Assembly: GCA_030704615.1 (NCBI GenBank)
Contig: CM060733.1
Coordinates: forward strand, 49,600,001 to 49,664,000
Source: Takakia lepidozioides
Taxonomy: Eukaryota > Plantae > Bryophyta
Direction of reading: 5' to 3'
DNA: 64,000 bases
In this document: positions 6,616 to 64,000 of the stretch, piece by piece
How positions within the stretch are numbered: position 1 is the stretch's first letter
Layout of the letters: each line of letters opens with the position of its first letter
Notes under the pieces: generated by a model
The model's database searches: none
The model's input: the letters and a program-made list of their open reading frames with translations, nothing else
Told to the model about the DNA's origin: nothing
Made by a program: the position numbers and the translations under genes

Positions 6616-7159
6616 ATTTATTGTTGCGGTAGTGCTTAGCAACATCGTGCTTGAAGAATGAAGTATATTTGGGAATATATATAGGCAGACTAGTTCAAAC
6701 ACCATGTCACTGTGTGATGTATTAACATCCAATATCGTTCGAAGGTGCAATGTCCTCTGAGGTTGTGTTATGGTGTTTCTATGGATGACATGTTTGATTG
6801 TAGTTGTGTCTTTCATATTGTATCATATTGTTGCTTCTGCCAGTCTATGCAATAGGGTTGGTGTAGTAGAATCTTTTTTTGCCACTCTTTGCAATTGCCA
6901 GCAGGGTTGGGGATCGATTCTTTGGTCATTAGAAGATTAATGCATGCTCTCTTTCCCTGCAGAGGGTTGTGTCTTGGTATAGATGGTCTTTCCTCTTTGC
7001 CAATTGTTGTCCTTATGAGAGCTCCACCGCATGGTTTATTAAATTTCATATTAATTTAATATAGTTTAATATCTAAATTAGTCATCTAAAATTAAATAAT
7101 ATTTAATAAATTGTAAAATCTACATGATCAACACGTGTCAGTCACACCTGCTCCAACAA

Positions 7160-34400: not shown

Positions 34401-37400
34401 GGACTATGTATGCATCAGTCTGTTGTGCCGCGAGTCTGTTCGCAATGGGTGTGTTCGACTTTCCTGTTCTCCCCTTACTCTCTTTTGTCTTCATTCCGCC
34501 CACTTCTTTGCAAACCAGTCTGCTGAACTGGAGGCGTGCTCGACAATCATTCCCCGATGGATATCAGTCTGTTCGCCTGGTACTTTGTCAGTCTGTTCTG
34601 CTGCCAGTCTCTTTGCAGTGTGTCCGTTGGCAGGGAAGTGCCTCCAATATGAAGCCGCTTCGCCTAAGAAAAGCGAGCAGTCCGGTGGACTGGCGGTCCG
34701 GTGGGCTCTCAGCCCGATGGGAAATGAGTTTACTGCACGTGCAAGGACCGTGGATGAATCTAGTACGATGCGTTCGTTTGGTGGACGTATTCAATGCGAT
34801 GACGGCGGATAGTTGGCGCCTGTGAAATCGCGCCACGTTGGCAGTGCCATGCCCGCTTTCCCCCTTCTACTTCTACTTTCTTCTCATGTTCCATGTGCGA
34901 TCGATTCCATTCTCTTCGCGCCTGTTTCTTCGTACTGTTTCGTTTTCATCTTTGCGTTTCCATCACCGTAACGAAAGACGGCCGTTCTTCCCCAGGGGTG
35001 GAGAGTCGCGGTGAGCCGCGAAGCGTCGCAAACACGCTCGCCTTCGTAACAACTCGAAGTTCATCGGCTCGGTGAGGTTCTCACTTGCTACGGTGTTTCC
35101 ATTCCATTCTGTGTCCTCTTCTTGCTTAGGGTGAGTCTTTTCATAGGACTTTTGTCTGTCACTCATTGTCCTTGCACCCTCGTTTCATTCTGCAGCGATG
35201 GAGGATGCTTGAGAAAAGGGTGGAGCGGACTGGGTGGATTTTGTGCACCAAACCAGACTGAAGAAGGAGCAAAGGTACTGGTACTCACCAGAGGAGTTTG
35301 ATCATAAAATAGTGGAAGCATTTGTAGACCTCCGCGCCCGGAAGCCCAAAAACTCGAATTGGCAGAAGGACAAGCTCTTCTGTCCCTTCTGTGAAGAGGT
35401 TATCAAGGACAAAATCCAACTAAATCGGCATTGTGTTGACACGGGTTGCAAGGAGACTGCTGCAACGATTCCACGGGATTTCAAGCCTTGGCCGATACTG
35501 AAAGAAATGTCGATTGCCAAAGAGGCCACAATGCGCATGCGCGGATCAGTGCTTGACCCCCGCACTTTGGAATTAGACGAAGTGCGCGCACGGTATGGCG
35601 TCTATTCTGGTGGCCCGTCAATGGAGGATTTGCAAGTGCACGGAACGCCGGACGCTGCCAGAAAACGTAAACTGAGTGATGGGGCCCAAAAAAAGGAGAG
35701 GCAAAAAAAGGAGAAAGCTGCAAGGTCTGCTCGCAAGGCAAGGGCAAAATCCACGCAGCAGACTGAACCCCGTCTTGGGCGGCAGACCCACACCATCAGT
35801 ACTGATACTGAAAGTGAATCTGTTCAGGGCTGGCAAACCATTATCCGGAATGATGACTTCGAAGGCCTGGTGACAAGTCCAGTGGACATTGACTTGCCTG
35901 ACCAGACTGGGCAGCAGACTCACACAAATATCGCGACCCATGCCAGAGGTTTAGGGTCAAAACCAAAAACTCAACAGAGCATTGAAGGGCCAGTTTGCCC
36001 TGGCACATTGCGCCTCGTTGACTTTGGGCTTTTCCCACCAGAGTGCCCACCAATTGGGGATCCAGACTTCTTCCGTTATTTCTACAGAGTTGCCCAGTCA
36101 GGTCTACCACGCACATTCATCCGACAGGCGGAACAGAACTGGTTGAACAGCTTTGAAGATGAAGATGACAATAAAGAAGTAGAGGAGGTAATGGTCAGTC
36201 TAACCGCCCAGTCTGTTCTCTGTGTTGCTTGAGTCCATCATGGGGGTCACGTTGCCTATTCAGTCTGGTCAGTCCACTATGTTCTTTCCTCAGTCCGCTG
36301 GCTCACTCCGCTCGTCAGTTAGTCTGTTTTATATCACTGCATTACTTACTGAGTCCGTTTGTCAGTCCGCTGGTCCAATCCACTGGTACAGTCTACTAGT
36401 TGCCTCCACCCTACGTACGCACGTTACGTCTATCAGTCTGCTGGTCTATGAGTCCAGTCTGTTGCATGAGGTGAATATAGAGTCCACGTCCATGTTCCTG
36501 ACGTCCAAGTTCTCTGCCGTGTACCAGGATGAACGTGTTTCCATTCGTAGGGCCATTCAGGCTTGGCGGATACCTAGCAATGATGCTCATTTACAAGCGA
36601 CTGCGGTGCGTGCGGAAGTGGACCGCGTGCGGGAGTACAGATTATTGAAGTATCCTGGGTCATCTGCTGCTATAGCGGCATTACATATTCAAGACACATC
36701 GGGGGGGAATGACTCTGGGATAGCCGAGTCTGCCATCCAGCAGACTCCCATTCAGCAGCCTATCATTCAGCAGACTCCAACAAAGCAGACTCCCAACGAG
36801 CAGCCCGTCATCCTACAGACTCCTCTCCAGGAGCCCATCATGCAGCCTATGCCAATGGAAAGTCCTGTCATCCAACAGACTGCGGACCAGCAGACTGCCT
36901 TTCTCTCACATAGCACGGCGCATTTTGCAGTTTGATGATCGCCATCACCGGTAATTCGACCCGGAGCTGAAGACCTCACACTTCCTCGGCTTAGGGTGGG
37001 AGAAATTAATCCCCATTTGGATTGGCATAATGAGCTCCACCGAATTGTTGCGGACCGCCGGTGGTCATTTGTACCCTTTCATTATTCCATGGAGTTTTCT
37101 ATTGAGGAAGCCAACCATGTTCTGGAAGCCGCCTCTGCTGTTGCCATTGAAGCCACAACTGTCCAAAATGCGTCGCCTCTACTTGTGCAGCTGATTCTCA
37201 TGGATGACCCACGGCCTGAAGACCTCAGACATATGCCTATGGCACATCCAACCTTTGGGGTGCGAAGAAAGCACTTGTTTGGATTGACTGAGGAGGACTT
37301 TGAGCGCATGGCAGCTTCTTTCCCACAACACAGATGGATGCAATTTGGCAATTTCCGCTCGTACAACAAGTTCATGAAGGATCTACATAGTTTGAGGATG

Positions 37401-40041
37401 GACTTACTCCAAGGAACAGACCATTCACAGAAGTTTGTGGTGGATGACGCATTGCAGTGGTTTGCATTGGTGATGGAGCGAGCAGTATTCGTCATTGTTT
37501 TGCAGAATCCCAATGTCTTCAAACTCCTGTGGTGTGGGACCCCAACTAAAGACCGCATCGGCGCCATAGCTCATCTCGATGGAGCATGCCGGTGCCGACA
37601 AATCAAGGACATTGGACTCGTCGGAAATCTCTTGGAAGGTAAAATGTTCTGGGCAACTTTCGTGTTTCAGCTCTATTTCTTTTGTCAACTTTTTTAGAAG
37701 TTCACATTTGCAGAAACATGTGTTGCAGGGCGAATTGATCTGGGAGACAAGCAAGTGCAGGCTGCTTTCGACTCTTTTGCCAGAGGTGCAAGGGACCTTG
37801 TCCTAGCTTTACAAGGAGTTCGGGAGACTGTCCAGCAGACTGGCCACGAGAATGTCCAACAACATATTCCCCACGACACATGTGGGCAGACTGCCCAAGT
37901 GGTGGAGACTGAGTATGTGCACCAGACTGTCCCGGGTAATAGGCCGGACCACTCCCAACAGACTGCCCCGCACACACATACTCACTATGTGCAAACAGTA
38001 CTGAGCGGGCAGCGAACTTTGCAGACTTTGCAGCAGACCGGAGAGCAGACCGGCCAACAGACTGCCCCTCAGCCGACTGTGCAGCAGACTAGCGAACATG
38101 GCCAGCAGATTGTCCCGCAGCAGACTGTGCAGCAGACCGACGAATCCAGCCAGCAGATTGCCCCTCAGCAGACTGTGCAGCACACTGACGAACCCACTCA
38201 GCAGATGGCCGAGCAGACTATCCAGGAGACTAACAACCAGTCTGTTCCCTGGATTGTGCAACAGACTCGGATGCACTGGCCTCACCGGGACCCTGTGGAC
38301 GAATTTGTGCTGAGTTCCCATCAACATGTTTTTGGATCTGCCCGTATGAGTATTTTGACCGAGTCCACTTTTCCCCCAGGCACATTCACTGACGACGTCA
38401 TCAGGTCACCGGTAAAGCATTCTTATCCAGCTCCCCGTGGCGTGCCTTCTATGACCTTCCAGCTAAGTCTCGTTTTCGTGCGCTCAGTGGCGAAAGCCAT
38501 AGATGAGTCTTAGGTGATGACCAAACTCAATCTGGGAACGCAAAACCGTATCATAGATCTTACAGAAGAGTTTGAGGAAGCAATTTCCGGTGGGTCTTCA
38601 ATACATGTTCTTGATATTTCCCAAGTCCATAGAGATCCGAACACCCAGCCGGCTGTCCACCAGACTAACCAGCACACTGAACAGTCGACACATGGAAGGA
38701 CTGCCGAGCAACTTGTGGCGGGGCAGCAGACTATCTTCATTGATGAGCAGACTGAATCGCAGACTAACCAGCAGACTGCACAGGTCACAGAGGGAAGGAC
38801 TGACCATGATGGCTCAGAGCGGCAGACTGCACAGCTCAGCTCTGACTGCACAGTTCAGACTGCACGGCCTGACCAACACACTGCACACTTCACAGAGGGA
38901 AGGACTGACCACCAACCTGCCACCGAGCACACTGCCCACATTGAGGAAGAGACTGAACCGCAGAGTTGCCAGCAGACTGCACAGTTCACAGACGAAAAGA
39001 CTGACGAAGAACCGGCGGCCGAGCAGACTGCCCACATTGAGCAACAGACTGAACATGCTGGCAAGCACACTGACGAGGAACCACATGCGGCGCAGACACC
39101 GTCTGGTATAGCGCTGGATTACATGGAGTATGCTCCCTCACCCCTTGGGCAGGTTGTGCCATTTCCTCTTTCAGCACTGTTGTTTATGTTTTAGCACATT
39201 GTGAAATTGGGCTAATTCGCCATTTTGCTCGGTATCCTCACAGGATGTTCGTCCCTCCGTCGGCAGACTGCCTACTTCAGAGGACATGACATCTTCCGCC
39301 CATGCCGCAAATGTGGGATCGACAACCAAGAAAGGTGTGGGGGTGAGCACGCCCCCCGATGCGCGGGTCAGTTCTACACATGCGACCCACAAAGCTGCAA
39401 AGACAGGTCCAGCAAGTGTAAACAAACCTGCTGACCAGCCTCTGTTGCGAAGTAGGGCGGTAGTGCTGCGTTTGTCTGCTCTATCCAGCCCGCCTACAGC
39501 TGTCCATGCTTCCCAGGGGAGAGGCAAAGCCAAGAAGCGGACTGTCGTGGACCATGCTGAGGAGGTCGAGGAGGGTCCGAGCACCAAGAGACCGGCGAAG
39601 AAAAAGTCTGGCGTCTTTATAAACAAGAACCGCAAGCTGGCCTTGGACATAGACAAAGATGTGGGTCGTTTCCTGGAGCAACACAGGTGAGTACTGTGCT
39701 CAGTCTCCTCATTTGTCTTTGTCATTAAGTACTTTGCGATCTGTTGTGGTCAGTCTGCTGCTGGTTGTCATCATTGTTTGTTGTGGTTAGTCTTGTCAGT
39801 CTGCTGATGAACTATTCAGCCTGTACAGTGTTTGGTACCAAGTTGACATCAGTCTGTTCAGTACATGAGGCTTCCCGAAGGATGGTCTGCTCTATGCAGG
39901 ATGGGTGCTCGGTTTGGCAAAGCACGTCAAGGCGGGTAATTCTATGCTGATGTTTTTTGAAGGGGACCCACGGTTTGAATGCGGACTGTCGCCCGATGAC
40001 ATAAAGGCACTCCAGAAGGTTGAGTCGGAGTGCACAGATAG

Positions 40042-41629: not shown

Positions 41630-42490
41630 TGGTGGTTCTCAAAGACCAATCCGACATTACCTGACTATAGCCATCAGCAGCACACATAAGAGATCATTTT
41701 GGGGTTGATGGGAGGTCAAATCCTCCATGGGTCACAACACAAGGTCAAGGACAATGTGGTGAGGGCACCTTCTTCTTCGACCTATTTCAGCCTATTTTTC
41801 CCTCTCATCACACTCGGCACCCCTGAATTTGCAGCACGGAGCAGAGCTTGACAAAAGTTTTTTAAAGATCCTTCACGATGGTGGGACAACTGCAGTCGCA
41901 AGGTGTGGCGTTTTCTTAAGGTACAATGTGAAGAAGTTTGTCCATCCTGGAAATGCGGGCTCTTGCGTCCTGTTAGTACCATGATTTGGTATTCTTCCAG
42001 CCCAGGCCAGTCACATTCATTTGTTTTTGCAATGCGTGTGCGATCCTGGCAGCCCTGGAAAATGAGGAAGAGGTCCATGGTGGCATCATCAAAGCTGGGA
42101 TTGTATCAGATGTCAATCTGACCAGTGCCGTGGTGGACATGTATGCCAAATGCGGGTGCATGAAGGATGCATTAAAGGGGGTGTTGGGCAGTATGGCTGA
42201 ACGGAATGTGGTGTCATAGAGCGTGATGGTGGCATGCTATAAGCGCTACAAGGGCAGCGGAGGGAGGCTTTGGAAACCTTTGAGCACATGTACAAGCTTG
42301 GCAGCCCTGGAGATTGGAGAAGAGGTCCACGGTGGCATCGTCAAAGCTGTAGTGATTGTATCAGATGTCATTATGAAAGCTGCCTTGGCAGACATGTATG
42401 TCAAATGTGGGTATGTGTAAGATGCAAAGGGAGTGATGGACAGCTAAGGGGTTGTGTATGCAATGTGGTGTCATGGAGCATAGTGATGGA
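41630..42490 (+). pseudogene. PDF-motif plus PLS-PPR gene fragments
   Basis: KTNPTLPDYSH...DGRSNPPWV; KFFKDPSRWWDNCSRK|GT; VTFICFCNACAILAALE..EEVHGGIIKAG..SAVVDMYAKCG..AERNVVS*. Confidence 0.75.
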
Positions 42491-42629
42491 GCAAAGGTCG
42501 GGTTCCCCCCCTGAGTTTGAATTAAGTCTAGTGCAGAGAGGGTGATTTAGGGGCTGAGCTTTGGCTCAGCCTCAAGATTTAGAAAGTTGGTGCATAGAGT
42601 CCATTCAAATGGAGTACTGTTGGGCAGTC

Positions 42630-43670
42630 ATGGAAAAGGGGGAAGAGGTGCATGGTGACATTGTCAAAAGCTGAAATTAATGTACCTTATGTCATTCTGA
42701 ATAGTGCCCCCTGGTGGACAGGTCTGCCAAATGCGGGTGCATAGAGGATGCAAAGGGAGTGTGGGGAAAACCTGGAAAAGGGGAAAGAGGTCCATGGTGA
42801 CATTGTCAAAAGCTGGAATTGTACCTTATGTCATCTGAACAGTGCCCTGGTGGACAGGTCTGCCAAATGCGAGTGCGTAGAGGATGCAAATGGAGTGTGG
42901 GGCAGACTTAGAAAAGGGGGAAGAGGTCCATGGTGACACTGTCAAAAGTTGGAATTGTACCTTATATCATTCTGAATAGTGCCATGGTGGACAGGTCTGC
43001 CAAATGCGGGTGCGTAGAGGATGCAAATGGAGTGTTGGGCAGACCTGGAAAATGGGGAAGAGCCATGGTGACATTGTCAGAAGCTGGAATTGTACCTTAT
43101 GTCATCTGAATAGTGCCCTGGTGGACAGGTCTGCCAAATGCGGGTGCGTAGAGGATGCAAAGGGAGTGTGGGGCAGACCTGGGGCAGACCTGGAAAGGGG
43201 AAGCTGAGGTCCATGGTGACATTATCAAAAGCTGGAATTGTACATTATGTCATCTGAACAGTGCCGTGGTGGACAGGTCTGCCAAATGCGGGTGCGTAGA
43301 GGATGCAAAGGGAGTGTGGAGCAGACCTGGAAATGGGGGAAGAGGTCCATGGTGACATTGTCAAAAGCTGGAATTGTACCTTATGTCATTCTGAATAGTG
43401 CCCTGGTGGACAGGTCTGCCAAATGCGGGTGCATAGAGGATGCAAAGGGAGTGTTGGGCAAACCTGGAAAAGGGGGAAGAGGTCCACGGTGACATTGTCA
43501 AAAGCTGGAATTGTACCTTATGTCATCCTGAATAGTGCCCTGGTGGACAAGTCTGCCAAATGCGGGTGCGTAGGGATGCAAAGGGAGTGTGGGGCAGACG
43601 TGGAAAAGGGGGAAGAGGTCCATGGTGACATTGTCAAAAGCTGGAATTGTTGTACTTTGTGTCATTCTGA
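42630..43670 (+). repeat. Tandem repeat, about 137-bp unit x about 7.5, derived from PPR L/S-motif coding sequence
   Basis: Units start GGAAA(A/T)GGGG..GAGGTCCATGGTGACATTGTCAAAAGCTGG at about 42632, 42774, 42911, 43047, 43192, 43329, 43466 and 43602; decode to EKGEEVHGDIVK.G....LNSALVD.SAKCG..EDAKGV. Confidence 0.85.
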
Positions 43671-45674: not shown

Positions 45675-48600
45675 TTATATTGTCTTCTTCGTGACACCTA
45701 CACGACCTGAAACCTTGCGAATTTTCGAATATATATGTGCTGCAAGTGCAGGTGCAGACACCCTCTTGCTGGTTCTCCGCAAAACCCTAGGCCGGGTTTT
45801 CCAGGGCTCCACGAAATCTCGTCTCCTTTTCAGAGACATGTTGTTGTTGTCGTTCAGAGGACGGAAAGCCTTTGCTGCCGCAGGGTGCAACATTCCAGCC
45901 GCACTTTTCGCCAGGATATCAACGAGCTGCCCTCTGCACATACGAAGAGCAGATCGGGCATGTACCTCCAGGTATTTGTCATCACCACAATGCGAAATAT
46001 GTCCGCGAATTCTTGGTCCATTGAGGCTGAGACCTCTAGAGGTGCCTCGTCGTAGGGAATGGTTCCCAGTGTCGTGCCACAAGTGTGCACAAGGAGGCCA
46101 TCCTTCAGGTCAGGGTGAAGCATCTTCAGGACACGGACCTGATGCTTGCATAAGTTTCCCTTCATTGCCCATGGGCACGTGCAACAAGCCCAATCGCAAT
46201 TAGGATTGTAAACAATGTATGTTGTGCCGGGGTGGTTGCTGCTGAGAACGTAGGCTGGTTCACCAAGACCCAAAGGAAGAGTAACATTCTCAGCAGGAAT
46301 GTCTCGTGCCGCAAGTATAGAACTGGATATGTACTTTTCGTGTTTGTCATTTCTTATGAACCCATGGGTCTTCAAATGGATTGCGTACCAGTAGTGTGTT
46401 AGCACACGGCCAGCGAGTTCCCATATAAGCCAATCCACTCTACGACCACTCATCTTGCCTTTCCCCATGGCAAGTCTTGCCTTCAGATTTCCATGGTATG
46501 CCTCAATGCTTGCGTTTGTGTCTTGGCTCACATGAGGGACATGACGGGCTGCTGTACACCACATTGCTATTTTGGGCTTCCAGTACTGCTCGATATAGTC
46601 AAGAAATTTATGTCATTTCGGGTATTTTGACCTCATACGACGGATTCTCCTTGCAACCCACCGAAGCGCTCTTTTCTCGTTGCGTGGTCCCCCTCTACAG
46701 TACATGAGGTCTCCCATATCCTTCAACAAGTTTACAGCGGTCACCGGATCCTTTGTTTTCTTGCATGATTGCTTCACCTATGCCTTGCGGACATGCCAAA
46801 GACAGAGGAAAATGAGTACTCTTTAAAAAACAATTATGTACAACACACATGGTACACATTAGAGTCTTGGGATCGGACTGCAATGGTGGACTGCCGGAGT
46901 GGACTGTAACAGTGACCTGTATCAGCGGGCAGAGCCACTAGACTCGCCCAGTGGACAGTACAATGCCATGACGTTGATGTGCTAGAATAACCCCATTGGA
47001 CTACCCAGTGGACTTCCCCGTTGGACTTCCCCCTAGCTAGGACTGGGGCAGCGGACTGCCCCATTGGACTGCCACAGCGGACTGCCGGGACTTGCCAGGG
47101 ACTGTCGAGTGGACTTGGCAGCGGACGGCTGACCTCAGGGACTGCTGAGTGGACTTGCCAGCGGATTGCCGAGCGGACTTGCCAAGGACTGCTGAGTGGA
47201 CTTGCCATGGACTGCTGAGTGGACTTCCCAGTGGATCGCCGAGCGGACTTGCTGGGGACTGCCAGCGGACTTGCCAGGGGACTGACGAGCGGACTTGACA
47301 GCGGACTACCAGTGGATTTGCCCAGCGAACTGCCATCGGGTTTCGCCACAGATTTCTGCCAGCGGACTGTAGCTATGGACTGCTGCAGTGGACCTCGACA
47401 ATGGACCGGTGCTGTGGACCAACAGACTTACCGAATATCGTTGATTTCTGCTTCGGCATCGTTCACAATGAAGGCATTGGGTCGCCAACTCGGCAAATCT
47501 GCGAGGAGTGAATCACGCAAGGCTCTCATCCACGGCACCAGGTCTGTTGTCCGATTCCTCGCGGATATGATATATGCAACTGGTATAACGTTCAACCACT
47601 CGTCGAAGACCATCAACGTGTACAGTGGGAACTATTGGAATGCACAATGTCAGATGGTCAGAGCATGCAAATTCCGCTCAGTTCTGCACGAGAAGACTTC
47701 ATAAGAGTGATGAGGTTTGCAGCGGTTCACAGTGGGTCTGTCCCTTGGTCTTCCGCAACGTACACATAAAAACATACAGAAAGAGTCAGCACACCAAATT
47801 TTATGTGAATGTTGCATGGTACTATGCTATCATGCTCCTACAAGTCCATGGAATCGTTCGAATAGTACCTTTCATGATTTGTCCCAAAGGTTGCATCACA
47901 TGCAACGATACGGTCATGTCCTAGTTCCAGCATTCGTCGTTTCTGCCACGGAGTCTGTATGCCAATAGTGAATGTTAAATCTCCATCAAAATGCTCGAAT
48001 GTTGGCTCTAATTTCTCCTCTTGATAGAAAAAAACGGACGTAGGATTCTGGTCTCTCCACATGCGCACACTCTCTGCATCATCGGCGTGCTTTTTGAAGG
48101 TTTGCCACGCACGTTTCTCGGCAAGGTTGCGAACATCTTGCTCCAACAAGAAATCATCGCGGGGCCATGCATCGCCCAAGCCGGTGTTGTTCATCACGTG
48201 CTCTTTATGCTCCATCATGATTTGGGTGACCGACAAGCCTCGGCACAAATACTCGTCGACCCAGGCTTTCAATTCCTCGCTAATGTGTGGTGCATAGGCA
48301 TGGCGGGTGTTCCTGAACTCTGCGGACTTCCCATGCGAGGGTTTTTCTTGCGCATCTGTATGCTCCATGTTGTTGTAGTACACGAGGACACAGATGTCAG
48401 GGGCGAGATAACATTGCTGGACCTTGAAACAACATTGGCAACCACGCTTGTAAGACTCTCCATACTCCGACTTCTTTCTCCTTGGGCATTTATGAGGGCA
48501 AGATGTTCTAGCATCCACAAGAGGTCCTCTACACTTCTGTTTTGGATCCTCCACTATTGCCTTGTTGATGCGCTTGTCATCAAGACCGTAACAACATTGA

Positions 48601-50328: not shown

Positions 50329-53300
50329 TCACCAGTAATCCCCACAAGAGCAAATTCCATTTTGAAAGTGGTGAAAGCGGTTGGCATCCCGTACAACAAT
50401 TGCTCTGCCTACAATGTTTGAGATAAATTTGGTGGCAGTGTGGCAGTCACCACACACTCGAAGGTTCTTGATAATGCGGATAGGCATCCCAGGGGGCATG
50501 CTGATGAGCCCGAAAGCAATGGCTAGCCTCTCGCTGTGGTGGCAAAGGAATGATTCTCTTTGCTCCTCCTCCACATCATGCAATACAAAGCTTGTGTCAG
50601 GCACATACCCGGCCTCCTTCATTTGCCCAGACAATCTCTGCAGCTCAGCATGGATCTCCCCAATTTGTGGATGCAATTTGTCATCTGCAACAAATGTATG
50701 CAACTGGTTGTCCACTTCTATGGAGCTGCGGCCAGACTCCTTTCTGACACCTCTGTCCTTCATCAATTTTCTCACATTTGCTTTATCCTCCCACCTGCCA
50801 GCTGCAGCATAGATATTTGATAGCAGCACGTAAGTTGCAGCATGCTGTGGATCACTCTCAAGGATACTTTTTGCTGTACATTCTGCTAGCTCCACATTAC
50901 CATGAACTCTGCAGGCACCGAGCAAGGCCTTCCACACAGAAGCATCTGGTCTGATTGGCATTTTCTTAATGAAGGCCTCTGCTTCATCCAATTGCCCAGC
51001 ACGAGCAAGGAGGTCCACCATGCAGCCAAAATGCTCCTCTGTAGGTTTCAGGCCATAAGTGTCAGTCATGAAGTGAAAGTAGTGACGGCCTTCATCAACT
51101 AGGCCAGCATGGCTACATGCAGAGAGAAGAGATATAAATGTGATACTCTCTGGCTGAAAGCCTTCCTGTTGCATTTTTTCAAATACTTGCACGGCCTCTC
51201 TACCGCACCCATGCTGACCATATCCTGCAATCATCGCACTCCATGAGACCACATCTCGTTCAGCCATTTTGTAGAACACTTGATGTGCATCCTTCAAGCT
51301 CCCGCATTTGGCATACATGTTTACAAGGGTATTCTCCAAATTAAGATATGATGCAATTCCAGCTTTGATGATGTCAGCATGAACCTCTTTACCCTTTTCC
51401 AGAGCTCCTAGGCCTGCACAAGCATTGAGAATGCAAATGAATGCGACCCTATCGGGCTTCACCCCTTCCCGTATCATTTGCTCATACATCTCGAAAGCCT
51501 CTCCACCACACCCATGCTGAACATATCCAGCAATCATTGCACTCCATGAGACCACATCTCGTTCAGACATTTTGTTGAACACTTGACATGCCTTAATCAT
51601 GCTCCCGCATTTGGCATACATGTCAACAAGGGCATTCTCCAAATTAATGGTTAACCCAACACCAGCTTTGATGATGCGAGCATGAATATCTTCGCCTTTT
51701 TCCAGGGTTCTGAGGGTGACACATGCATTGAGAACGGATATGAAAGTAGCCCTGTCAGGTGTCACCCCTTCCTGGATCATTCGCTCATACATTTCACATG
51801 CCTCTCTTCCATACCCATGTTGAGCATATCCGTTGATCATTGTGGTCCAGGAGACCACATCTCGTTTAGCCATGTTGTCGAACACTTGATGGGCATCCTT
51901 CATGTTCCCGCATTTTGCGTACATGTCAGCCAGAGCAGTCTGCAGAACAATATCTGGCGCAACTCTAGCTTTGATGATGTCAGCATGCACCTCTTTTCCT
52001 TTTTCCAAGTTCCCTAGGCTGGCACAAGTATTGAGAGCACTAATGAACGTGACTCTGTTGGGCGTAAACCCCTCTCCTTGCATTCGTTCATACAGTTCGA
52101 AAGCCTTCCTACCACACCCATGCTGACAATATCCTGTGATCATCGCATTCCAGGAGACTACGTCTCTTTGAGCCATATTGTCGAACACTTGACAGGCATC
52201 TTGTATGCTCCCACATTTGGTATACATGTCCGCAAGAGCAGTCTCCAGAATGATATCTGGTGCGATCCCAGCTTTGATAATGTCAGCATGGACCTCTTTG
52301 CCCTTGTCCAGGATTCCTAGGTTGGCACATGCCTTGAGAATGCAAATGAATGTGACCTTGTTGGGTGTCACACATTCCCGCAGCATTTGCTCATACATCT
52401 CGAGAGCTTCCCTACCACAACCATGCTGAGCATATCCTGCGATCATTGTGCTCCATGAGACCACATTTCGTTGTTCCATATTGTCAAACACTTGACGGGC
52501 ATCCATTAAACTCCCACATTTGGCATACATGTCTGCAAGGGCAGTCTCCAGAATGATCTCTTGTGCAACCCCAGCATTGATGAGGTCAGCATGGACCCTT
52601 CTACCCCTTTCCAAGGCTCCTAGTATGGCACATGCATTGAGAACAGAAATGAACGTAACCCTGTTAGGTGTGACCCCCTCCTGTTGCATTTGCTCATACA
52701 CCATTAAAGCCTCCTTACCACACCCCTGCTTGGCATATCCTGCCATCATTATAGTGTATGAAAACACATCTCGTCTTGGCATTTTGTCAAAGACTTTACG
52801 TGCATCCACCACACTCCCACACTTGACATACATGTTGACAAGGGTGTTGAGCAGGAAGATGTTTGCCTTGAATCCACTTTCAATAATCTGAGCGTGAACC
52901 TGCCTTCCCTCTGCTAGAGCTTTCAAGTTGATGCACTCCTGCAGGACAGAGACATAAGTATTGGAGTCTGCCTCAATGCCTTGTTGAGTCAACATGTTCA
53001 CAGCCTCTTTCAGCTGTCCTGCCTTCCATAGTGGCTTCACCTCCCCAAAAGAGCCAGAAGAGTTCTTGTTGACTCCCTCTCTTTGTCCTCTTTCAGAAGC
53101 AGTGATGACAGTGGAGATGGTATCCATGCCGGCAGCCTCATGTCCAGGAAAAAACTGTGCCTGATTCAACCCTGCCAACCTGCATAACTCAAAACTCTGG
53201 GTGGCAAACCTTTATCCTTAAACTCACCTAAGACAACCCAAAGCACCTAGATACTCCAAATATGATCCCTCCATGAAGACGAGCTTCTTGCTACATATTA

Positions 53301-53886
53301 ACACAGCTACAATACTACTGAGACATCTACATTTAGAATACCTATCCCATTTGTTTGAGTTAGAACCCTTTAAATAAAATCATCAAAAACAATACCCATT
53401 GTCTTCACGGCCTTGAGCTCCATGGTGTACATCGGCATTACAATTATCAACAGATTCTCCTCGACCTTGTATCCTGGCAGCTAGCTCAGATTTCACCCAA
53501 GAAGGATTCGACCAACCCTCAATCCAAAGGACCTTGTATGTATGCTTATGTCTGAAGTCGGGTGATCTTTGACTTCTCTGTGAAAACGACCAACCGGCGG
53601 CTGAGCGGCCATAGATTCAAAGACAGCCTCAGATAAACTAAACGATAGGAGGAAATAACCTTGAACGACCTACTGTTTGCACAGCCAGCTCATGACGAAG
53701 AGAAAAATTGTGATAAATTAAGGCAACTGCAGATACGATATCATGGTAAAACCTTTCACATTCAAAATCAAGACAGCCTACCTTGTCAAACCTGTTGTCC
53801 CACCACTGGGAAGGATCTGCAAAAAACTCCTTCCAGAGCCCTTCTAGACTCATTGCTTGACCTGCGTGAGAAATTCGCAAGCACAT
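50329..53886 (-). CDS. PLS-E1-E2-DYW pentatricopeptide RNA-editing factor with N-terminal OSB-type PDF motif
   Basis: Main exon 53171-50329: 20 PLS motifs, E1/E2, DYW with HSERLA, CGDC and terminal DYW; upstream exons 53886(?)-53782 and 53577-53466 splice in frame; true start and transit peptide unresolved. Confidence 0.93.
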
Positions 53887-54572
53887 GAGAACTTCGACAG
53901 ATTCTGATTCCTTCGCTCTGGATCAAAAGTGGAAGCATTTGTGCATGCACACATCCTCTACACGAAACTTTCTCCCACCAGCGTCTAATTTTGTGTCGGA
54001 TGGGTGAAAGCAACTATGGACCCTAGATATCACCCACGTACAGAATTTGCAAACCCATAACGATGCAGAGAGCTACAAGCCGATACCTTTCCTCACTTTC
54101 CCCGGAGGCTGGGGAAGCGTCATCGCTATCACTTGCAGATGTCCCAGGTCCAGCATCTTAAACGTGAACATCCATTTCAGCTACACAGTCTGGCCTCATA
54201 ATCTGCTGCACATACAGCGCCTCACACTCCCTGAGTGCAACGACAAGACAGGGACTTGCGTATGGCCTCCCCCTACACGCGCAGCAGAGGTGCCATCCCT
54301 TGAGGCTTGGTGGGTTCCACATTCCAACTGTGCAGTTGAAGGTGGGGTGCGTTAGACGGACGTGAGAGACACTGTGGCGTTCATCCGACGACAGTTGGCG
54401 TGCAGACTTGCAAAATACGTGTGGGGGCAGTCCTTCTCTGTACTTGTTCTGGGAACCAACAGCGACGCGGGTACTTTGCCCCGCTTTCAAATCAGATAGA
54501 AGAGCGGGGGCGCGGCCAGATCTGTATTTCTTGAGCTCCCAGGGAGAGGTGCGGGACAGGGAATGCGTGAGA

Positions 54573-57500
54573 ATGGCGGAGGCTGTGTTCAACATTATTC
54601 CGGTGGACAATTTCTTGTCGGATCATGCCGCTCTGCGGTTTCCTGAGGTTTGTTCGGTTCTCTCGATTGTCCATGGTAGTTGTCACTAGAGCAGCGGCTT
54701 GGAGCTTGACATTGTGGTTGTGGTGACGTGCGCGGAAGTTTTTGGCTGTCTTGAGCATTTCAGCTGTTACCGGTCTCAAACTGTACCGTATGGCTAGTCT
54801 CGAAGTAGAATATATGGTTGTGTGAGTGGGGTTGGCTTTGGAGGAGCAAACGTCATGCGCCTTTGATGAAACATGTCGCTGAGGCCTAATTTGCGCCTTT
54901 CGATTCGGATTCTACAAGTTTCTGTCTCGTATCTGCTGATCTCGAGGTCCGCTGAGCGTCCCATCTCTCAGTGCTTGTTTACCTTTGCAACAACGTACAC
55001 CAGTTCTGTGCGCCTATTTTGTATACAACAATAGGCGCACCTCCCTAGTGTGGGCAGGAGCTGTTGGCTTGGAGGGGTCTCTGCATTTGTCGGAGCCCTG
55101 TTTTCGAATTGTGATGCTCAAGTTGCTGACTGGTTACTGGTTCGGTCAGCATCTTTGATGTGTGGGATCCAGTGTCATATGCGACATTGCTCAAGCTCAT
55201 TCAAGAGCTTATCCTTGTGGTATAAGCACAGGGGACTATGGTGACTGTGCCTCACTGTTGCTCGTTGGAAGTGTATGAAGATGAAGGGTAGAGGTGGTTT
55301 TTTTCCAGTTTGCTACTGTTTCAGTACAACTAGCGTCTTTGAGCCAATAGGACACACCACTTTCCTTAAATGGCAGTATCACATACCTGCTGGAATTTCA
55401 GTAGGCCTGCAGTCAAATAGGAATTGTAAGAGGACGGCATTGCAGTCATTATCTGGGGCAAGCTCATGATTACTGGTAAAGGCTTTATGTTTTCAGTGAG
55501 CAACTTTGTGATCCCAGTTTTAGGTCTACCTGTGTCTCATGCTCAGACAAGGTGTTCAATTTCTCACTCTAAATTGCTCAAAATAATCAGAACTTCATGT
55601 TTTGGAAACCTGTTTAGATGCACGATCAGGAAAATATCACTTCTTATCCACTTCCAAGGTTCCGAGCTTTTGCTTCTTGCTGTTTGTTTCCTCAATTACC
55701 TTCACTTACAAACTGAGGTGCTCCATTTGATTGTTTAGAAGGTGAGATATTGGCTCGTGAGACTGTAGCTTTTAAAACTTTAGTAGCTTACGATTTTATG
55801 TGTCTGTTCCCTTGGATACAGGCACAGCTAGTTGCTCCTGCAATGTAGATGTTGCATGTACTGTCCTGTCTGTTGAGGAAGGTGTCGATCGTGAAGGAAT
55901 TCTTCAGTATCAGGCTTCTAACTTGTGGTGCTTGAAATTGTGCCTGGTTGTGATAAAAGGTTCGAGCAGCTATAGCTGCGTTGCAGTGTGTTGGTGACCT
56001 AGCCAAGCCGCCAGATGTGCGGTGGACTTCTAACATGGATATACTTGACTGGCTTGGAGGCTTCTTTGGCTTTCAGGTGTGCATTTTTTGTTCTCACTTC
56101 CTTCATATATTTAAGAAAAGTTCCTGTTCTTTAACCAGCATGAACTGCTTTGCCTTGCCTCCAGAATGTAACAAGAGGCTGAATTCACTGCCCAGAGCCA
56201 CCATTTTATAGCTATTGACTAATGTTACTTTCGGTGTACCCTTTCATTTGGGAATATCAGGGATTTTTTCCCCCTTTCTACATTTCTTGCAGCTGTTAGC
56301 TGTTGTGGATAATTGTTCCGTATCTGGCTATCGTGGCGTAGTTATGTAGTTGTATCGGTGACTTTACGTATAACTACTTGCATCATAACGTGGTGGTAGT
56401 GTTATTTGACACTGGTAAGCGATCTTTTTGCAGCGTGATAATGTGAGGAATCAGCGAGAGCATCTTGTTCTTTTATTAGCCAATGCCCAGATGCGGTTGC
56501 AGCCTGCACCATTATCAATTGACAAGGTAAGAGTCTTTAACAATATGTGCCCTTTATGAACATCCTTTGGATTCTATTTGCTTACAAGATGAACTTGTGA
56601 TGCTCTTTGGTTTTGGAGCATAGCTTACTTGTACACTGATTCTTAGCAGTTGATTCCTATAACAAGCATAATCGTCAGTGTGAGGAGGGTAGGCGAGGTC
56701 AGAGAGTTCTTACAATAAGTATGTGAATGATGTCTTGCAAGAAGGAAAGTCATTGTCAAATATTTGACAGGCCACATGGATTGAAAATTTTGCTTTCTCC
56801 ATTTTATTGTTGGTTGTGTTAAGCAACAGATAACCCCGTAGTCAATGGTAAATAATTAGTCGTCATAGTCAGTGAGTCCTTGCCATGGTGCAGGCTATGC
56901 TGCATTCTACAAAGTGGGATCTTAGGCTTTCAATGGTCTAGAATCAGACTGTGGTAGGTTGCACTATTCCTTGACTGGAAATAAGTGCTCCCATGTGGAT
57001 TGGAGTCAAGAGTTTTAATGGGAATGATTGATGCCGACCTTGGCTTAATCTCATTCTTGTCGTTACTTCTATAAAACATTCAAACATTGTGGAAGATTCT
57101 CAGTAACTCTGCAAGCTTTTACCATATTGCGTGATTGTTGTCCGAGGAAGCAGGTGTCGTCCCCAGTGGGTCACCAGGATGAGAGCTGGTAGTGATTGTG
57201 CAAACTGCTTCTTTGGTAGAGGCTTTAAGCCAAGAAATATGTTGTAGTTACAAGCCCATAGGAACAGCAGAGGGTCTCAAGCCTCTAGCTCTCTGTCTAT
57301 TAATGGAGGGCTCCTCTTGCCCTGTAATTTATTTGAGTGGTTGCCATGTTGTGTGCTGCAGCTGGAGGCCAGTGTGGTCAGAAAGATTCGAAAAAAGGTG
57401 ACTCAAAATTATGTGTCTTGGTGCAGGTTTGTCAGAAAGCCACACCACTTAAGGTAAGAGTACCCATAGCATTAAAAAAGGTTCCTATTCACCTTTGGGT

Positions 57501-60500
57501 TAATTGTCTGCCTCTTCGTACTGATTGGGTGGAAAAGCATAATGTATGCCAACTGCTGTTCGCCTCTGGCATGGTTCAGAATGTGCACCAATGAAAAAAA
57601 TAGTGTGATGCCAACACACCCTATGTTGGTTTTCAGTGATAGTTGCTGTTTGTACAGTAGTGCTCTGTAAACTTAGTGGATCTGTGTGCGAAGCATGACC
57701 TCTGTTACCACAGAGGAAACTCCACATGTTTCATTTGCAAAGGTGTGCTTTCACCCACCAGTTCATATTGGGTGCAACAACTGAAGAGTGCAGAGTGTGG
57801 CATGTATGGATGCATGTCTAACATGAATATCGTGGGCTGTAAGGCTGTTGGACGGAAAGCAAGAGGTATTGGATGAGCGGCGGGAGTTGCTGTATACGTC
57901 ATTGTACCTTCTTATCTGGGGAGAGGCTGCCAATCTACGTTTTATGCCTGAGTGCCTTTGCTTCATCTTCCACCATGTAGAGCTTCTACATTTCCATGTG
58001 TCTGCACACTCAACTGTCTCGTTTAGAATTGTGTTACTCCACATGGCCTGTGCATTATCAGCTTTGGCATGGTGTTCTATTTCAAATGACTCAGTGACCT
58101 ATTTCAGCATCCAACAGATGGCCCAGTGGTTAGGGCACAAGGCCGCCTTATGAGTGGTTGTGGGTTCAAAGCCACATGTGAAAGTTGGATGTCACCCATA
58201 ACTGGGTCAACATGTTATGTAGTGTGTAACCTGGGGACTCTCAAGTCCTTGGGGGAGGTTTGTGCAACCACGTTGCCCCGGTCACAACCATTAGAAGGTG
58301 TCCACTTTCCAAATGGAAGGTAGTAGTCCTTTGGGGTGAAGTTATGCTTGCTTCAGCAGGAGTCTTCCTCTGACCTATTCTTCTGGATTATACATATTAC
58401 TCACACTGAATGTGAACTCTGTTAGATGTGTTTTAGGCATTCCTAAATCTTCAAAGGAATGTCCACGTGCTTCCCCGTTATGACTAGTGGACTGCGGATG
58501 TGCACTTTGTCCGTCATGCATATGGTTGTCAATACTCTCTTCAGGCCTGGCAAGTGATGGAGATTACGTGTGTGTATGTCAGATGACCTTTGAGTTGAAT
58601 AGGATGTTGGAGAGGTTCATCGATGAGCTCTCGGCACAGTCTGTGAGGCCTACATACTGTGAGCCAAATGGATTTTTGTTACGGGTGGTCCTGCCATTGT
58701 ACACCATTGTGAAAGCAGTAAGTCTCTGGTTCTCACACTTCACCGGTGTATCATTCAAGCTTCAATGTATGTTGTATGTGGTGGAGATGAGATGGTTTTG
58801 GTGTTGTGGGTAGGGGGCTGGTTGAGATGTTCATTGGTTGGTTACAAGGAATTTAGTGATTTGTATGCAAGATGGCCATGGCCACTGGCTGGAGATGGCT
58901 GAAGCAGATCTGCTGTCATTCTTGCAGGAGGCAGAGTCGAACAACAATGGAACAGCTCCCCATTCATGGTGGCGGAACTATGATGACCTTAACGAATACT
59001 TTTGGTACTTCTTGTCACCATTTGTGATATGCACTAAATGTGCTGTTCTAGGAAAGAGAAGAACTGTTGTTATTTGTCTACTACATTTCGACATGCCCTA
59101 TTTTGTTGAAAACTCCCTTTTGTTTGTGCTAAGTTGGTACAAACTGCATGATGGGACAGGTTTCTTCTGCACCACTTTTTGAATGTTCTTGGCACCAGAA
59201 GGATTTGCTGATGTGTGTCAAACGTCATGGTTCTCTGGGAGTTGCAAGTGGTTTGGCATATTTTCCTAGATGTTAGTCAAGTGGCCTGTCAGGATGCAGC
59301 TACGTAATGATGAACACTTTGTGAAGCTGAGTAATTGCTTGGGGGAAAAGACTCTTCTCTACATGGAAGAGTTCCTGCAGGGAGGTCATGACCTCATCAT
59401 TGTCTACATTTTGCAGGAGCAATAGATGCTTTACGCAACTGCAATGGCCATTGCAACTGGATTCAAACTTCCTCGTTGAGCCTTGGAAAGAAAAGGTAGC
59501 GGGGAAAGATTCCATGGAGTTTGTGAGGATGGTTTTGTGCATATCATTGTTTCTTGGTGAAGCGATTAGTGAAAAGCCATCTCTTGGTCATGTGCAAGCA
59601 GTCACATGTTCTCTGTTATGATGGGGCCATGTCCTTTATTCTTGCTTTAAATGAAGAAATGTTATTTGGTTGGCAGGTTGACAGGCACACCAAGCAAAAG
59701 GTTGGGAAGACTGGATTTGTGGAACAACGCTCTTTTTGGAATGTGTTTCGTAGCTTTGACCGGCTATGGATAGGTTATATTCTGGTACTGCAGGTGAGTG
59801 CTTCAGGTCTGTCAATCTTCAGCATGCATTATTAGCTCTTAGCGACTGGTTGGGATATTGTTGGGGGCCAATTTTGAACAAAATAGTGCTATGACTACCC
59901 TGCTGCGTCCTATGTCAGGGTAGCCAATACATGCATTTTTCAAACTGTGTCCTAGTTGTATTGCTTTAGAAATAGGGGTCTTCAAGACAATAGGCTAGTA
60001 CTTGTCTTAGACTGCTGCAAGACTGCAATTGGAATATGATGAAGACCTGGTAATGCAGCTGTAAGGGTTCCTGGAACCATTGAAGCTGGTGGTATGTTTG
60101 TTCTGAATCATGCTAGATTCGTGGGTACAGATGTGGATTCTATGGTTGATGGGCACTTGCTACTTGCAGTGAATTAGACTTGGGTTAAACTTCTTTAGTT
60201 GGTCACCTCATTTGTAGAGTAGAACTTCTCCAACGAAGGGGAAGTAGGGGTTGAGCTTGCAGGGTAGGCAGGATGGTGACACATGGATGCTTCGATGTTA
60301 AATGGCTCAGCAATTGGGTTCTGTAAAGCTTGAGGTTGGATGTACTAGAGATAGTTGAGTATCAGCATTGTGAACTAAGATACTGAACAGAGCTTTTTCT
60401 AGTTACCCTGCTGGCCATATGAGACAAATGGTGTCGGTGCGTTTTTGCTTAAAACACAATTTTAATTTCATGGGAAGATTGGTATGTTGTTGAAGAAAAA

Positions 60501-63500
60501 AGAGAATGGCATCATGTTTTATTGATGTTGCTAATAGCAGCTTGCTATTGGTAGGCATGCATCGTAACCTTGTGGCATGGGAGTGGGCCACCTTGGGTGG
60601 AGCTGCAAAAGAGAGATTCGTTGGCCCGTTTCTTAACTATTTTCATTACTTGGGCAGCATTGCGTGTGCTTCAAGGTATTGGCGTCTCTGTCCGTTAGTT
60701 GGTATATTGCTAGAGTATTCAAGACTATGATCAAGGCTATTATTTCAATAACATTCTCATTTCATGTTTCATATAGGGGACTATGGTTTGCATTTTCTTC
60801 CTTTCTTTTTGCCGCTTTTTGTCTTTGTTCTTGTTTAGGGTGGGGTATTGTAGTTTGTCTGTAGCCTTTTGCAGGCTCCTATAGTGTCTGTCTGTTGTGT
60901 AGAGACAGCCTCTCTAGTCATGCAACCGTGCTTGATTGGAGCGACGTTAGTGTAATGCTCTTGTAGGCCATGTGTTGTTGGCTGTACATTTTCAGCTGTC
61001 TTCAAATAGATGAGCATTTTGCTTCATGACCTAACTGTTTTGTTGTTTGGTTTATGGTTGTCTGGTAATGTGAATGTGCTTGGCAGCTTTGCTTGATTTT
61101 GGGATGCAATATAGCCTTATCTCCAGGGAGACAATCTCAATTGGTGTACGAATGGTCCTGAAACCCTTGGTGGCTACTGGATGGGTTATAATCTTTACTG
61201 TGTTCTACAGGTTGAGATTAAACACTTGTTTCAACTTAGTTTCTCCATATTCATTTCGGTGCGATTTGTTCTGTGAATGTATTGCTTCTAGTCTTCTGAG
61301 GGTAGATGCAAAGACCTCCAAGCGACATTGTCTGTGAGTGTATGTCTATCTTCAAGGGAGGGGGAAGAGAAAGGGCCCTCGTAGGGGCGGGGTTGCCGGG
61401 TAGGGTGAGAGCAGGGGAGTACAGACGTAAACCTAAGAAAGGGGGCATTTCATGTATTAACCTCTTGCTCTGATTGAGGGATCTGCAGGAGTATGTGGGC
61501 ACAACGCCACCGAGATAGGTCTTGGTCAACATCAGCAAATAACCTACTGATTAGATTTCTGGAAGCTGCTGCTGTATTCGTTCTTCCAGAGGTTTTGGCA
61601 CTTCTACTCTTCATTTTGCCATGGGTGCGAAACTTCGTCGAAAACTCAAGTTGGAGGGTCTTAAATCTCTTAACTTGGTGGTTTCAGGTATTTGTTTTGA
61701 TCTATTTCACTCAATATGTGATTTGTACTGTAAAGTTTCTGTGCCATGGATGGATGCATTTGAAACTGCACCAGGATGAATTTGTGGGACATGTAAGGTT
61801 TTGCTGGTAGGACAGCAACATCTTTTCTGTTTCTGGGATATAGAAATGCTGTATAAATGATATATCTTACAACTGTACTAGAGCTATGGTAGTCATTGTT
61901 GAGGTTCTTGTTCCCATGTTCAACACTCCATCTGTCAGCCAGCTTGAGATATGCCTAAGAGCAGTCTTTCTTGAAACTTTAGGAGCTCTTCTCTGACCAG
62001 GGCACATGTTCTAGCTTTGCTGTTAAGTGGGGCTATGGCCATAGGGCTATCATTTCAATACACCGCCTGCCTTCTTTACCACTATTGGTCCATGGTATTT
62101 TGGTATCATGGAACTGGTGCATATGCTTGTCTACAATAAAGCTTTTCACTGCGTCCGTGCAGAGTCGTACATTTGTGGGCCGAGGTTTACGGGAGGGTGT
62201 TGTCGATAACATCAAGTGAGTGTCTTGGTTTTGGATAACACTGTCATATTTGATTTGGACCCTTTGTAGGACATCTGGATGATATTTGAACCTTAAGACA
62301 AAACTACATTTTAATGCATATTCAAGAACTTCAAGTCACTCTTGAAACAACTGGAGATCTGATCAAATCTCTTGGCTGGTCCTGCAAAGACTCAGAGATT
62401 AACCAGGTGGCATCCCAGCTCTTGGCTTCCAAATGAGATGGTTCATGAGGGAGCGCTGTCCTTTGATAGCCAAACTGACAAGCAATAGAAATGGGCATGA
62501 TGGTGAAGATATACTGTTGATGGTGAGGCTTACAATCATGAATTTGGCCGTTGGATATTAAGTAGGAGAGTATCATTTGAGTGAGGTTATGGAAGATCCC
62601 TCTTGTGGGGGGTGACAGCTGTGGTGCTTTCAAGGCAAGGCATTCTTGGATGGTGGGTGCAGTCCTTTTGTAGGTTCTGTTGACAGGTAGCACCTCCTGA
62701 TCACAGAGGTGCTGCCAAAATCCTCCTGAAGTTGTTGATGTATTAACCTTGGATTGAAGAAAATCCTCCAGTGGTTCTCAGTGTTATATGTTCTCTTACT
62801 TCTCTAACTCCCTCTATGTGACCCTTCGGATTGGCAGGTACACAGTGTTCTGGTTGCTAGTACTAGCATCAAAGTTTGCTTTCAGCTACTTCCTTCAGGT
62901 AAACCACAGCTACTGATGCTCTTTTGTTCCCAATGGTGCCTGCACATATGGCACTGTAGGTCCTTTTGTGCAATTCTGTTGGAGAGTGCTCTCTTGCTGT
63001 AGATCCTGTTGTGGTCCTGTCCCCCACATTTTCGTTTATTGCTGCATATATAGCAATGCTATCATCGATCTTCTTACCACCTTGTCCCACATTCTGATTT
63101 GATTTATGCTTCTGCTTTGGGCAGATCAAGCCTTTGATAAAGCCCACCAAAGAAATTCTACAGATCAGAAACATCACATACAAGTGGCACGAGTTTTTTG
63201 CACACGGTATGGAGCTGCTAGTCCTTGTGCTATTTGCTGTCCTAGTCGGTCTAGGACATGACATTCTCAGGTCCTTCTCTTTGACTTACAGGTTTGATCT
63301 TGATGAACCTTGATCACTTGGCATGTGCACCGGTGGACATTTCCTTTGACTTATGTCATGAGAATTGGCAATGGATAGGAGACTTAAAAATCATAGGTCT
63401 TGTGGATGAAGATGCCTCAATGGGTGGACATGATTCTTCATCTGTTCCAGGTGTCCTCCTTTTTATGGAGGGTCGGCACTGATAACCTTAATCACTTGCT

Positions 63501-64000
63501 CAGAGTCCCTTTGTTGTGGGTTTCTGCAGGCAATCGGGCTGCTGTAGTCGCATTGTGGGCTCCAGTAATTCTGGTAACAATTTGATTGAGTCTTGTCACT
63601 TTCAAAGTCCCTTCAAAGTTCTAACTGGTGTTACAGCTGTCTATAAAAGGTGGAGGGTTTGTTGGCTCATGGAACTGATTCTACAGCGCTATACAATGTG
63701 AAGAGAACAGCTTATCAGTCTGTAGGTTGTGCTTACTGCAAACCAGAAGCAGTATGTATTCTTTGCTGTATTAACACAGATCAGTGTGAGGTGTCATAGA
63801 CAAGGATGCACTTGTCCTGTTTCAACATTTAACAGATGCAAATGGACACACCAAAGTTTTAATTGCTGCTGTTGTTTTGTCCAGATCTATTTTATGGATA
63901 CGCAGATTTGGTATTCTATTTGGTCTGCCCTTGTTGGAGCTTTAGTGGGTCTCTTTGAACATCTTGGAGAGGTCATTCTTTTCTATCTCTACACTTAGTT
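54573..64000 (+). CDS. Callose synthase (1,3-beta-glucan synthase), CalS11/CalS12 (GSL1/GSL5)-like clade, 5' part; 17 exons in window, continues beyond
   Basis: [25 protein letters not shown]|VRAA..DILDWL..FFGFQ|[17 protein letters not shown]; [20 protein letters not shown]; [12 protein letters not shown]; [20 protein letters not shown]; [14 protein letters not shown]; exons start about 54573, 55960, 56434, 57362, 57844, 58583, 58928, 59417, 59677, 60555, 61087, 61489, 62164, 62838, 63125, 63530, 63885. Confidence 0.95.
58110..58330 (+). mobile_element. Probable tRNA-derived SINE in callose synthase intron 5
   Basis: A-box TGGCCCAGTGG (58119-58129) and B-box GGTTCAAAGCC (58163-58173); no complete cloverleaf; 3' limit uncertain. 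Confidence 0.5.

Follow-up and report, generated by a model that had tools for sequence, protein, structure and literature searches.

The window analysed here comprises 64,000 nucleotides of Takakia lepidozioides and carries, on its reverse strand, a gene whose product places a PDF motif of the OSB type ahead of a PPR-DYW protein. In the initial annotation a 949-aa ORF (50329-53178) was described as a PPR-DYW cytidine deaminase preceded by two small exons that encode the halves of the PDF motif; Pfam matches to PPR, E, E+ and DYW domains bore out the ORF, and both half-motifs were located in the exons where they had been placed. Read from its 5' end, the gene starts with the first exon seen in transcripts (54087-54245, the most 5' extent seen, with a phase-1 donor), in which three short, out-of-frame upstream ATGs (54213, 54199 and 54175) precede the in-frame ATG at 54171 that opens a 28-aa leader. 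Intron 0 (53862-54086; 225 nt, GT-AG, phase 1) is followed by PDF exon a (53782-53861; 80 nt) with the first half of the motif (W..FF.DPSQWWDNR..K), by intron 1 (53578-53781; 204 nt, phase 0), which lies inside the PDF motif, and by PDF exon b (53396-53577; 182 nt), which contains the PDF core up to 53476 and then a linker. Intron 2 (53180-53395; 216 nt, phase 2, as in the homolog-like model) has an alternative acceptor 8 nt downstream, giving an exon start at 53171. The large exon opens with a low-complexity linker and a degenerate helical cap (52966-53179) before the first L motif, and continues with 20 PLS motifs (50944-52965), E1 and E2 motifs (50740-50943) and the DYW deaminase domain (50329-50739; 151 bits), with a deviant PG box, the gating domain, HSE at 50538, CxxCH at 50454 and a terminal DYW followed by the stop codon.

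This gene model is based on assembled contigs of the organism from two runs (X1 and X2), which we presume to derive from RNA. Bins over the introns were nearly empty and those over the PDF exons were deep, mostly with paralog-derived contigs. The two small exons had originally been spliced in frame from an ATG at 53886 through junctions 53782/53577 and 53466/53171, and the GT-AG junctions and open frame of that model both hold. Its first junction agrees with the contigs: the first base of a zero-mismatch contig is 53577 itself, and in both X1 and X2 a paralog joint passes over the same intron, intron 1. The start codon and the second donor required correction. ATG 53886 is intronic, because the boundary of an X2 contig (record 15, zero mismatches), which spans 54085-54245 and then continues elsewhere, matches an upstream exon spliced from 54087 to 53861, the boundary at 54085 being the predicted splice shift; PDF exon a thus corrected begins as in Sphagnum, with G-x-A-M in phase 1. 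An X1 contig (record 8, zero mismatches, 53577-53395) runs past the donor at 53466 to the GT after 53396, and the 70 nt beyond the former donor code for a linker resembling that of the Sphagnum protein P0017. Homologs have a phase-2 intron at this later position instead, including Diphasiastrum (L003) and a moss-like ENA locus (L006), and in Diphasiastrum the ATGCAG acceptor before L-x-G is identical to the acceptor found here. The homolog-like model (54171-54087, 53861-53782, 53577-53396 and 53179-50329) has an open frame of 1065 aa.

Head to head with the PPR gene lies a gene on the forward strand (54458-64000), represented by a contig of 6029 nt, which from its motifs we take to be that of a callose synthase; its first coding exon spans 54573-54647, with the ATG at 54573, and further exons follow from about 56000. 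The observed 5' ends of the two genes are approximately 210 bp apart, an arrangement that suggests a shared promoter, and the position of the callose synthase ATG on the other strand leaves little room for a longer PPR leader exon. A 150-aa ORF (54610-54158) was considered as a transit peptide and rejected, as the first callose synthase coding exon overlaps it on the opposite strand and the interval 54246-54457 had no contig cover in X2. Elsewhere on the forward strand, three decayed tandem units of both PDF exons, spaced by about 550-580 bp and containing stops or frameshifts, occupy positions 5138-6616, and no PPR array was found downstream of them. A second, decayed PDF-PPR copy (41639-43666, forward strand) consists of PDF exon remnants (41639-41905) followed by broken PLS repeats, and no DYW domain was detected. 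The window also contains a single ORF (353 aa; 16004-17065, forward strand) encoding a member of the triose-phosphate/nucleotide-sugar transporter family, a run of GC-rich ORFs with no clear Pfam match (35234-39194, forward strand) and an ORF (45857-46564, reverse strand) in which a weak SWIM zinc finger may point to the remains of a Mutator-like transposon.

In proteins of this class, target choice lies with the PLS array, which reads about 20 nt upstream of a single cytidine, and deamination of that cytidine falls to the DYW domain. By this established knowledge, the C-terminal 880 aa can be read as an ordinary C-to-U RNA editor. Parsing gave exactly the 20 PLS motifs claimed previously, arranged as L, five S1-P1-L1 triplets, S1 and P2-L2-S2, i.e. 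the array of P-L-S triplets ending in P2-L2-S2 by which editing factors are recognized. It is followed by E1/E2 and by a DYW domain with HxE, CxxC, the second zinc site and the terminal DYW, the zinc ligands being complete. Of 13 P and S motifs, 11 have canonical code pairs (TN, SN, TD, SD, ND and NN), the noncanonical ones being those of the last two, P2 (SE) and S2 (GD), and the array is predicted to recognize an RNA element spanning -22 to -7 with the sequence U A n A A n G Y n G G n U G n U. The description of the DYW domain as intact is correct for the catalytic residues, HSE, CxxCH and the terminal DYW, but not for the PG box, which reads ESGRSSIEV in place of the consensus PGxSWIEV. Among 82 homologs, PG is retained in 81 and W in 72; replacement of P by S occurs in none of them and that of W by S in one. 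Nor does the box belong to the KP (U-to-C) type. In PPR56, a P2A change in the PG box impairs editing (PMC10482289).

The leader that begins at ATG 54171 is 28 aa long (about 45-165 aa in homologs), is not rich in S or R and has short uORFs ahead of it, and would make a weak transit peptide. With the PG box doubly deviant and the leader poor, "intact" was an overstatement. The locus had also been treated as singular; it is in fact one of many copies (T. lepidozioides has 750 DYW genes; PMC13386178) and may be partly decayed. It is conceivable, at a probability well short of even, that this copy makes no working editor. A related possibility concerns junction 2. Donor 53396 joined to acceptor 53171 causes a frameshift with a stop after 126 aa, and the end of X1 record 8 at 53395, together with an inferred 30-nt overlap with record 7, fits acceptor 53171 better than 53179. 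The main transcript of a decaying copy would then encode a PDF-only peptide of 126 aa, and at this locus the PDF exons would not be on the editor; the weak leader with its upstream ATGs, the promoter squeezed against the callose synthase gene and the deviant PG box, given the effect of P2A on PPR56 (PMC10482289), all agree with such decay. Two splice options nevertheless remain in frame (53396/53179 and 53466/53171), the homolog-like acceptor at 53179 is intact, and the 2.85-kb ORF and the PDF motif are lesion-free. Since acceptor 53171 is suggested by one contig of depth 6, through its end and overlap, we consider a frameshifted main transcript a serious but doubtful alternative to an in-frame junction 2. 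The locus is best regarded as a usable but imperfect example of the PDF-PPR-DYW family.

The identity of the PDF motif itself is clear. In a search with a profile of 81 OSB PDF motifs, both small exons matched on their own far beyond chance, the first with 31 bits (E 2e-11) and the second with 47 bits (E 3e-16). The motif is about 50 aa long and contains W, WxDxR, K, PDFxH, LW and PxW; the near-invariant OSB residues are all kept in this copy and are 83-100% kept among 24 fused motifs. The profile scores and these retained residues ruled out both a chance match and a fragment of a transit peptide. When the second exon was searched singly against 1.84 billion proteins, 141 matches were obtained, many with an OSB-like architecture; one of them falls into a cluster together with a protein called OSB1 and is recognized by SSB models, and the OSB matches with SSB-model hits include P0129 and P0055. 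An SSB-like OB fold was found by Pfam neither in the 949-aa ORF nor in the exons or upstream ORFs, which places the protein outside the OSB family, and the PDF motif matches no family in Pfam, NCBIfam, PHROGs or PDB sequences.

AlphaFold predicts the PDF module to be a compact helix-hairpin-helix domain (pLDDT 88), whose best match among PDB folds reached Z <= 2.8, a value that does not in itself prove a new fold. The same fold was independently found in the ESM Atlas in three PPR/DYW clusters of 57-127 members. In a model of the PDF module with the PPR repeats, confidence dips at the joint (pTM 0.68), and the linker between the PDF module and the array varies about tenfold among homologs, from approximately 7 to 90 aa. 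The PDF module on its linker is therefore more likely to act as a tether than as a fixed cap. Further ESM Atlas matches to the fold were two clusters of proteins from tailed phages (TM 0.71 and 0.61) and, at a weak level, a cluster of the bacterial Rad52 family, a hint that the motif may have come from a phage. To our knowledge, the PDF motif has been described as limited to green plants; we observed a protein made of nine PDF repeats in the dinoflagellate Effrenium voratum (P0042) and a weak PDF match in Branchiostoma belcheri (P0139).

A PDF motif followed by PLS repeats is annotated in the liverwort Calypogeia fissa, the mosses Sphagnum and Ceratodon purpureus and the lycophyte Diphasiastrum complanatum, in many cases with a full DYW end, and always under the name of a hypothetical or plain PPR protein; in the ferns Adiantum and Pteridium the motif is joined to PPR repeats. 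Some homologs bear two or three PDF motifs, and one transcript contig from another species encodes three of them and a PPR array in a single intron-free ORF. Among proteins retrieved by their C-terminal region alone, and so without selection for the motif, PDF is present in 14 of 22 intron-aware models from seed-free plants and in none of 65 from seed plants (Ginkgo, Cryptomeria, Pinus and angiosperms), counts that may both be biased by incomplete 5' models, the seed-plant models possibly missing 5' exons. An ENA contig placed among moss-like sequences by a tree (L006, 5750-9644, forward strand) likewise carries PDF exons hidden ahead of a PPR ORF of 1027 aa; as seen there, intron-blind gene calls split off the PDF exon, which explains the many short orphan PDF matches. 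The profile match, the intron positions, the annotated homologs and the spliced contig of another species jointly indicate that the architecture, an OSB-type PDF motif ahead of PLS-PPR-DYW, is a real fusion. Judging from these sequences, it is old, common in seedless plants and absent from the seed-plant editors sampled. Since homologs place the strongly conserved motif after a separate leader exon, it probably does not belong to a transit peptide that is cleaved off.

The intron positions also point to the source of the module. The OSB gene of the angiosperm Castilleja (L005) is interrupted by an intron in phase 1 ahead of the PDF motif and by one in phase 0 within it, a layout common to the fused genes of liverwort, moss and lycophyte (seen in L001, L003 and L008) and the gene studied here, and the position of intron 1 is shared by angiosperm OSB genes and those of Sphagnum, Calypogeia and Diphasiastrum. 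The simplest reading of these shared positions is that the PDF exon pair was captured from an OSB-like gene, ahead of a PPR-DYW gene, before the liverwort, moss and lycophyte lineages split. In a quick tree of the DYW region, built with half of the rows for Ginkgo, Cryptomeria and ENA, 7-9 changes were needed for PDF presence or absence. Many of the rows without PDF represent truncated models, one of them identical in this region to a PDF-bearing row, and we therefore read from this tree neither a single origin nor an order of gains and losses.

The initial annotation knew of no functional description of this architecture, and we likewise found no description of the PDF-PPR-DYW fusion in the literature available outside subscription, including OSB and editing surveys. 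A 2026 survey of OSB proteins required the OB fold and never mentioned PPR (PMC13393729), a kingdom-wide survey of editing factors from the same year listed domain fusions without PDF or OSB (PMC13386178), and a 2022 review of Physcomitrium listed no PDF-type domain (PMC9459714). The fusion is easily overlooked, because the motif has no Pfam model, its 5' exons are small and the usual assay constructs drop the N-terminus. It apparently constitutes an undescribed variant of a known enzyme class.

These genes would represent old organellar C-to-U RNA editors of seed-free land plants, with the layout leader, PDF, linker, PLS-PPR array, E1/E2 and DYW. The PDF module may be a built-in single-strand clamp; from its N-terminal position, on the side where the bound transcript probably exits the array with its 5' part, it would most likely grip RNA 5' of the PPR site, adding affinity or keeping the target unpaired, and would aid editing without being the catalyst. 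We tentatively favour this role of a sequence-independent helper gripping RNA, with a confidence that does not quite reach even. It is favoured because PDF motifs without an OB fold occur in algal four-repeat proteins, presumably RNA binders, and because the lineage with MORF helpers is the one whose sampled editors lack the module. P0068 of the volvocine alga Astrephomene (383 aa, four PDF repeats, no OB fold or SSB domain) is, judging by size and repeat count, presumably the ortholog of Chlamydomonas RB38/RBP40. The latter is a chloroplast RNA-binding protein, with presumed PDF repeats that would bind U-rich RNA, and partners the HAT protein Nac2; it acts in trans on psbD translation and has no deaminase. 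If RBP40 is a four-PDF protein like P0068, chloroplast RNA already offers a case in which a PDF protein and a helical-repeat factor act together. MORF helpers, which act in trans, are confined to seed plants (PMC13386178), a complementarity that amounts to a single phylogenetic contrast. Against the helper role, Physcomitrium PPR56 cut short at its N-terminus is an active editor in E. coli, human cells and Nicotiana (PMC10482289, PMC9508816, PMC13656186), so that nothing upstream of the array is needed there, whether or not PPR56 itself has a PDF motif.

What also counts against a grip on RNA is that OSB1 and OSB2 prefer ssDNA (PMC4166229), and because of this preference a second reading ranks close behind. 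The fused motif may keep the OSB specificity and tether the editor to nucleoid ssDNA, such as transcription bubbles or R-loops, with editing taking place near the site of synthesis. The PDF motif of OSB1 suffices for ssDNA binding (PMC6963530), the OSB residues are retained in the fused motif, two or three motifs occur in some homologs, and many PPR proteins associate with nucleoids (PMC10226603). A single motif per monomer may, however, bind weakly beside abundant tetrameric OSBs, and seed plants edit hundreds of sites using editors without PDF; we regard such tethering as possible, though on the unlikely side.

The lack of PDF in many relatives and in the sampled seed plants, the orphan and decayed PDF exons in the same window and the function of PPR56 truncated at its N-terminus might instead indicate that the motif has no nucleic-acid role and serves folding, import or protein contacts, or that it is a passenger, kept because of its place in the founder gene, with the promoter/leader exon on one side and the PPR exon on the other. 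Its aromatic and basic residues are nevertheless 83-100% conserved in the 24 fused motifs, across lineages that split more than 400 million years ago, while leader and linker cannot be aligned. Conservation of the motif but not of its flanks argues for continued selection on the same surface, and we consider the absence of a nucleic-acid role rather improbable.

The possibility that the protein deaminates cytosines in organellar ssDNA, with PDF and PPR both reading DNA, was raised together with the tethering. PDF binds ssDNA, designer PPR arrays can bind it as well (cited in PMC9508816), and SsdA, a DYW-like bacterial deaminase, acts on this substrate (PMC11789416). Yet enzymes of this kind, present in their hundreds, would load organelle genomes with mutations and remove the very sites they act on, no DYW feature suggests a switch of substrate, and canonical RNA-code pairs prevail in the P and S motifs of an architecture that is otherwise that of an ordinary RNA editor. 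The moss PPR-DYW clade to which we infer the protein belongs is moreover one of proven RNA editors (PMC9459714). We therefore hold ssDNA deamination to be very improbable, and hardly more credit is due to the broader notion that PDF-PPR-DYW proteins are natural cytosine deaminases of ssDNA with a programmed sequence preference, or editors tethered to R-loops, and can in addition introduce C-to-T changes into the DNA of organelles.

The protein shares with the PLS-class PPR-DYW editors (Physcomitrium PPR56 and PPR65, Arabidopsis OTP86) the PLS triplets, P2-L2-S2, E1/E2, the DYW domain with HxE...CxxC and terminal DYW, and the canonical code residues; unlike them, it adds an N-terminal PDF motif on extra exons and deviates at P and W of the PG box. 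With the ssDNA-binding proteins OSB1-4 and pTAC9 it has in common the PDF motif together with its two introns (phase 1 ahead of the motif, phase 0 within), but it lacks their SSB-like OB fold, and its motif is N-terminal (C-terminal in OSB) and joined to a deaminase scaffold. PPR-RRM, PPR-SMR, PPR-SAP and MORF-P fusions similarly combine a helical-repeat reader with a helper domain in cis, but these are mostly P-class proteins or rare fusions.

RNA editors of mosses, lycophytes and ferns have been described as self-sufficient PPR-DYW enzymes, while those of seed plants depend on MORF and further helpers. If many seed-free editors bear a conserved module that binds nucleic acid, they would carry their helper in cis. 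With the fusion, a coupling of editing to nucleoids and the nature of whatever replaces MORFs in seed-free editors can be tested directly, and the PDF module could be tried as an affinity booster for designer PPR editors. Should the reading in which these proteins write into DNA prove true, RNA editing would be linked to organellar mutation in seed-free plants. If the module is indeed a helper, the PDF-first layout may be ancestral for land-plant editors.
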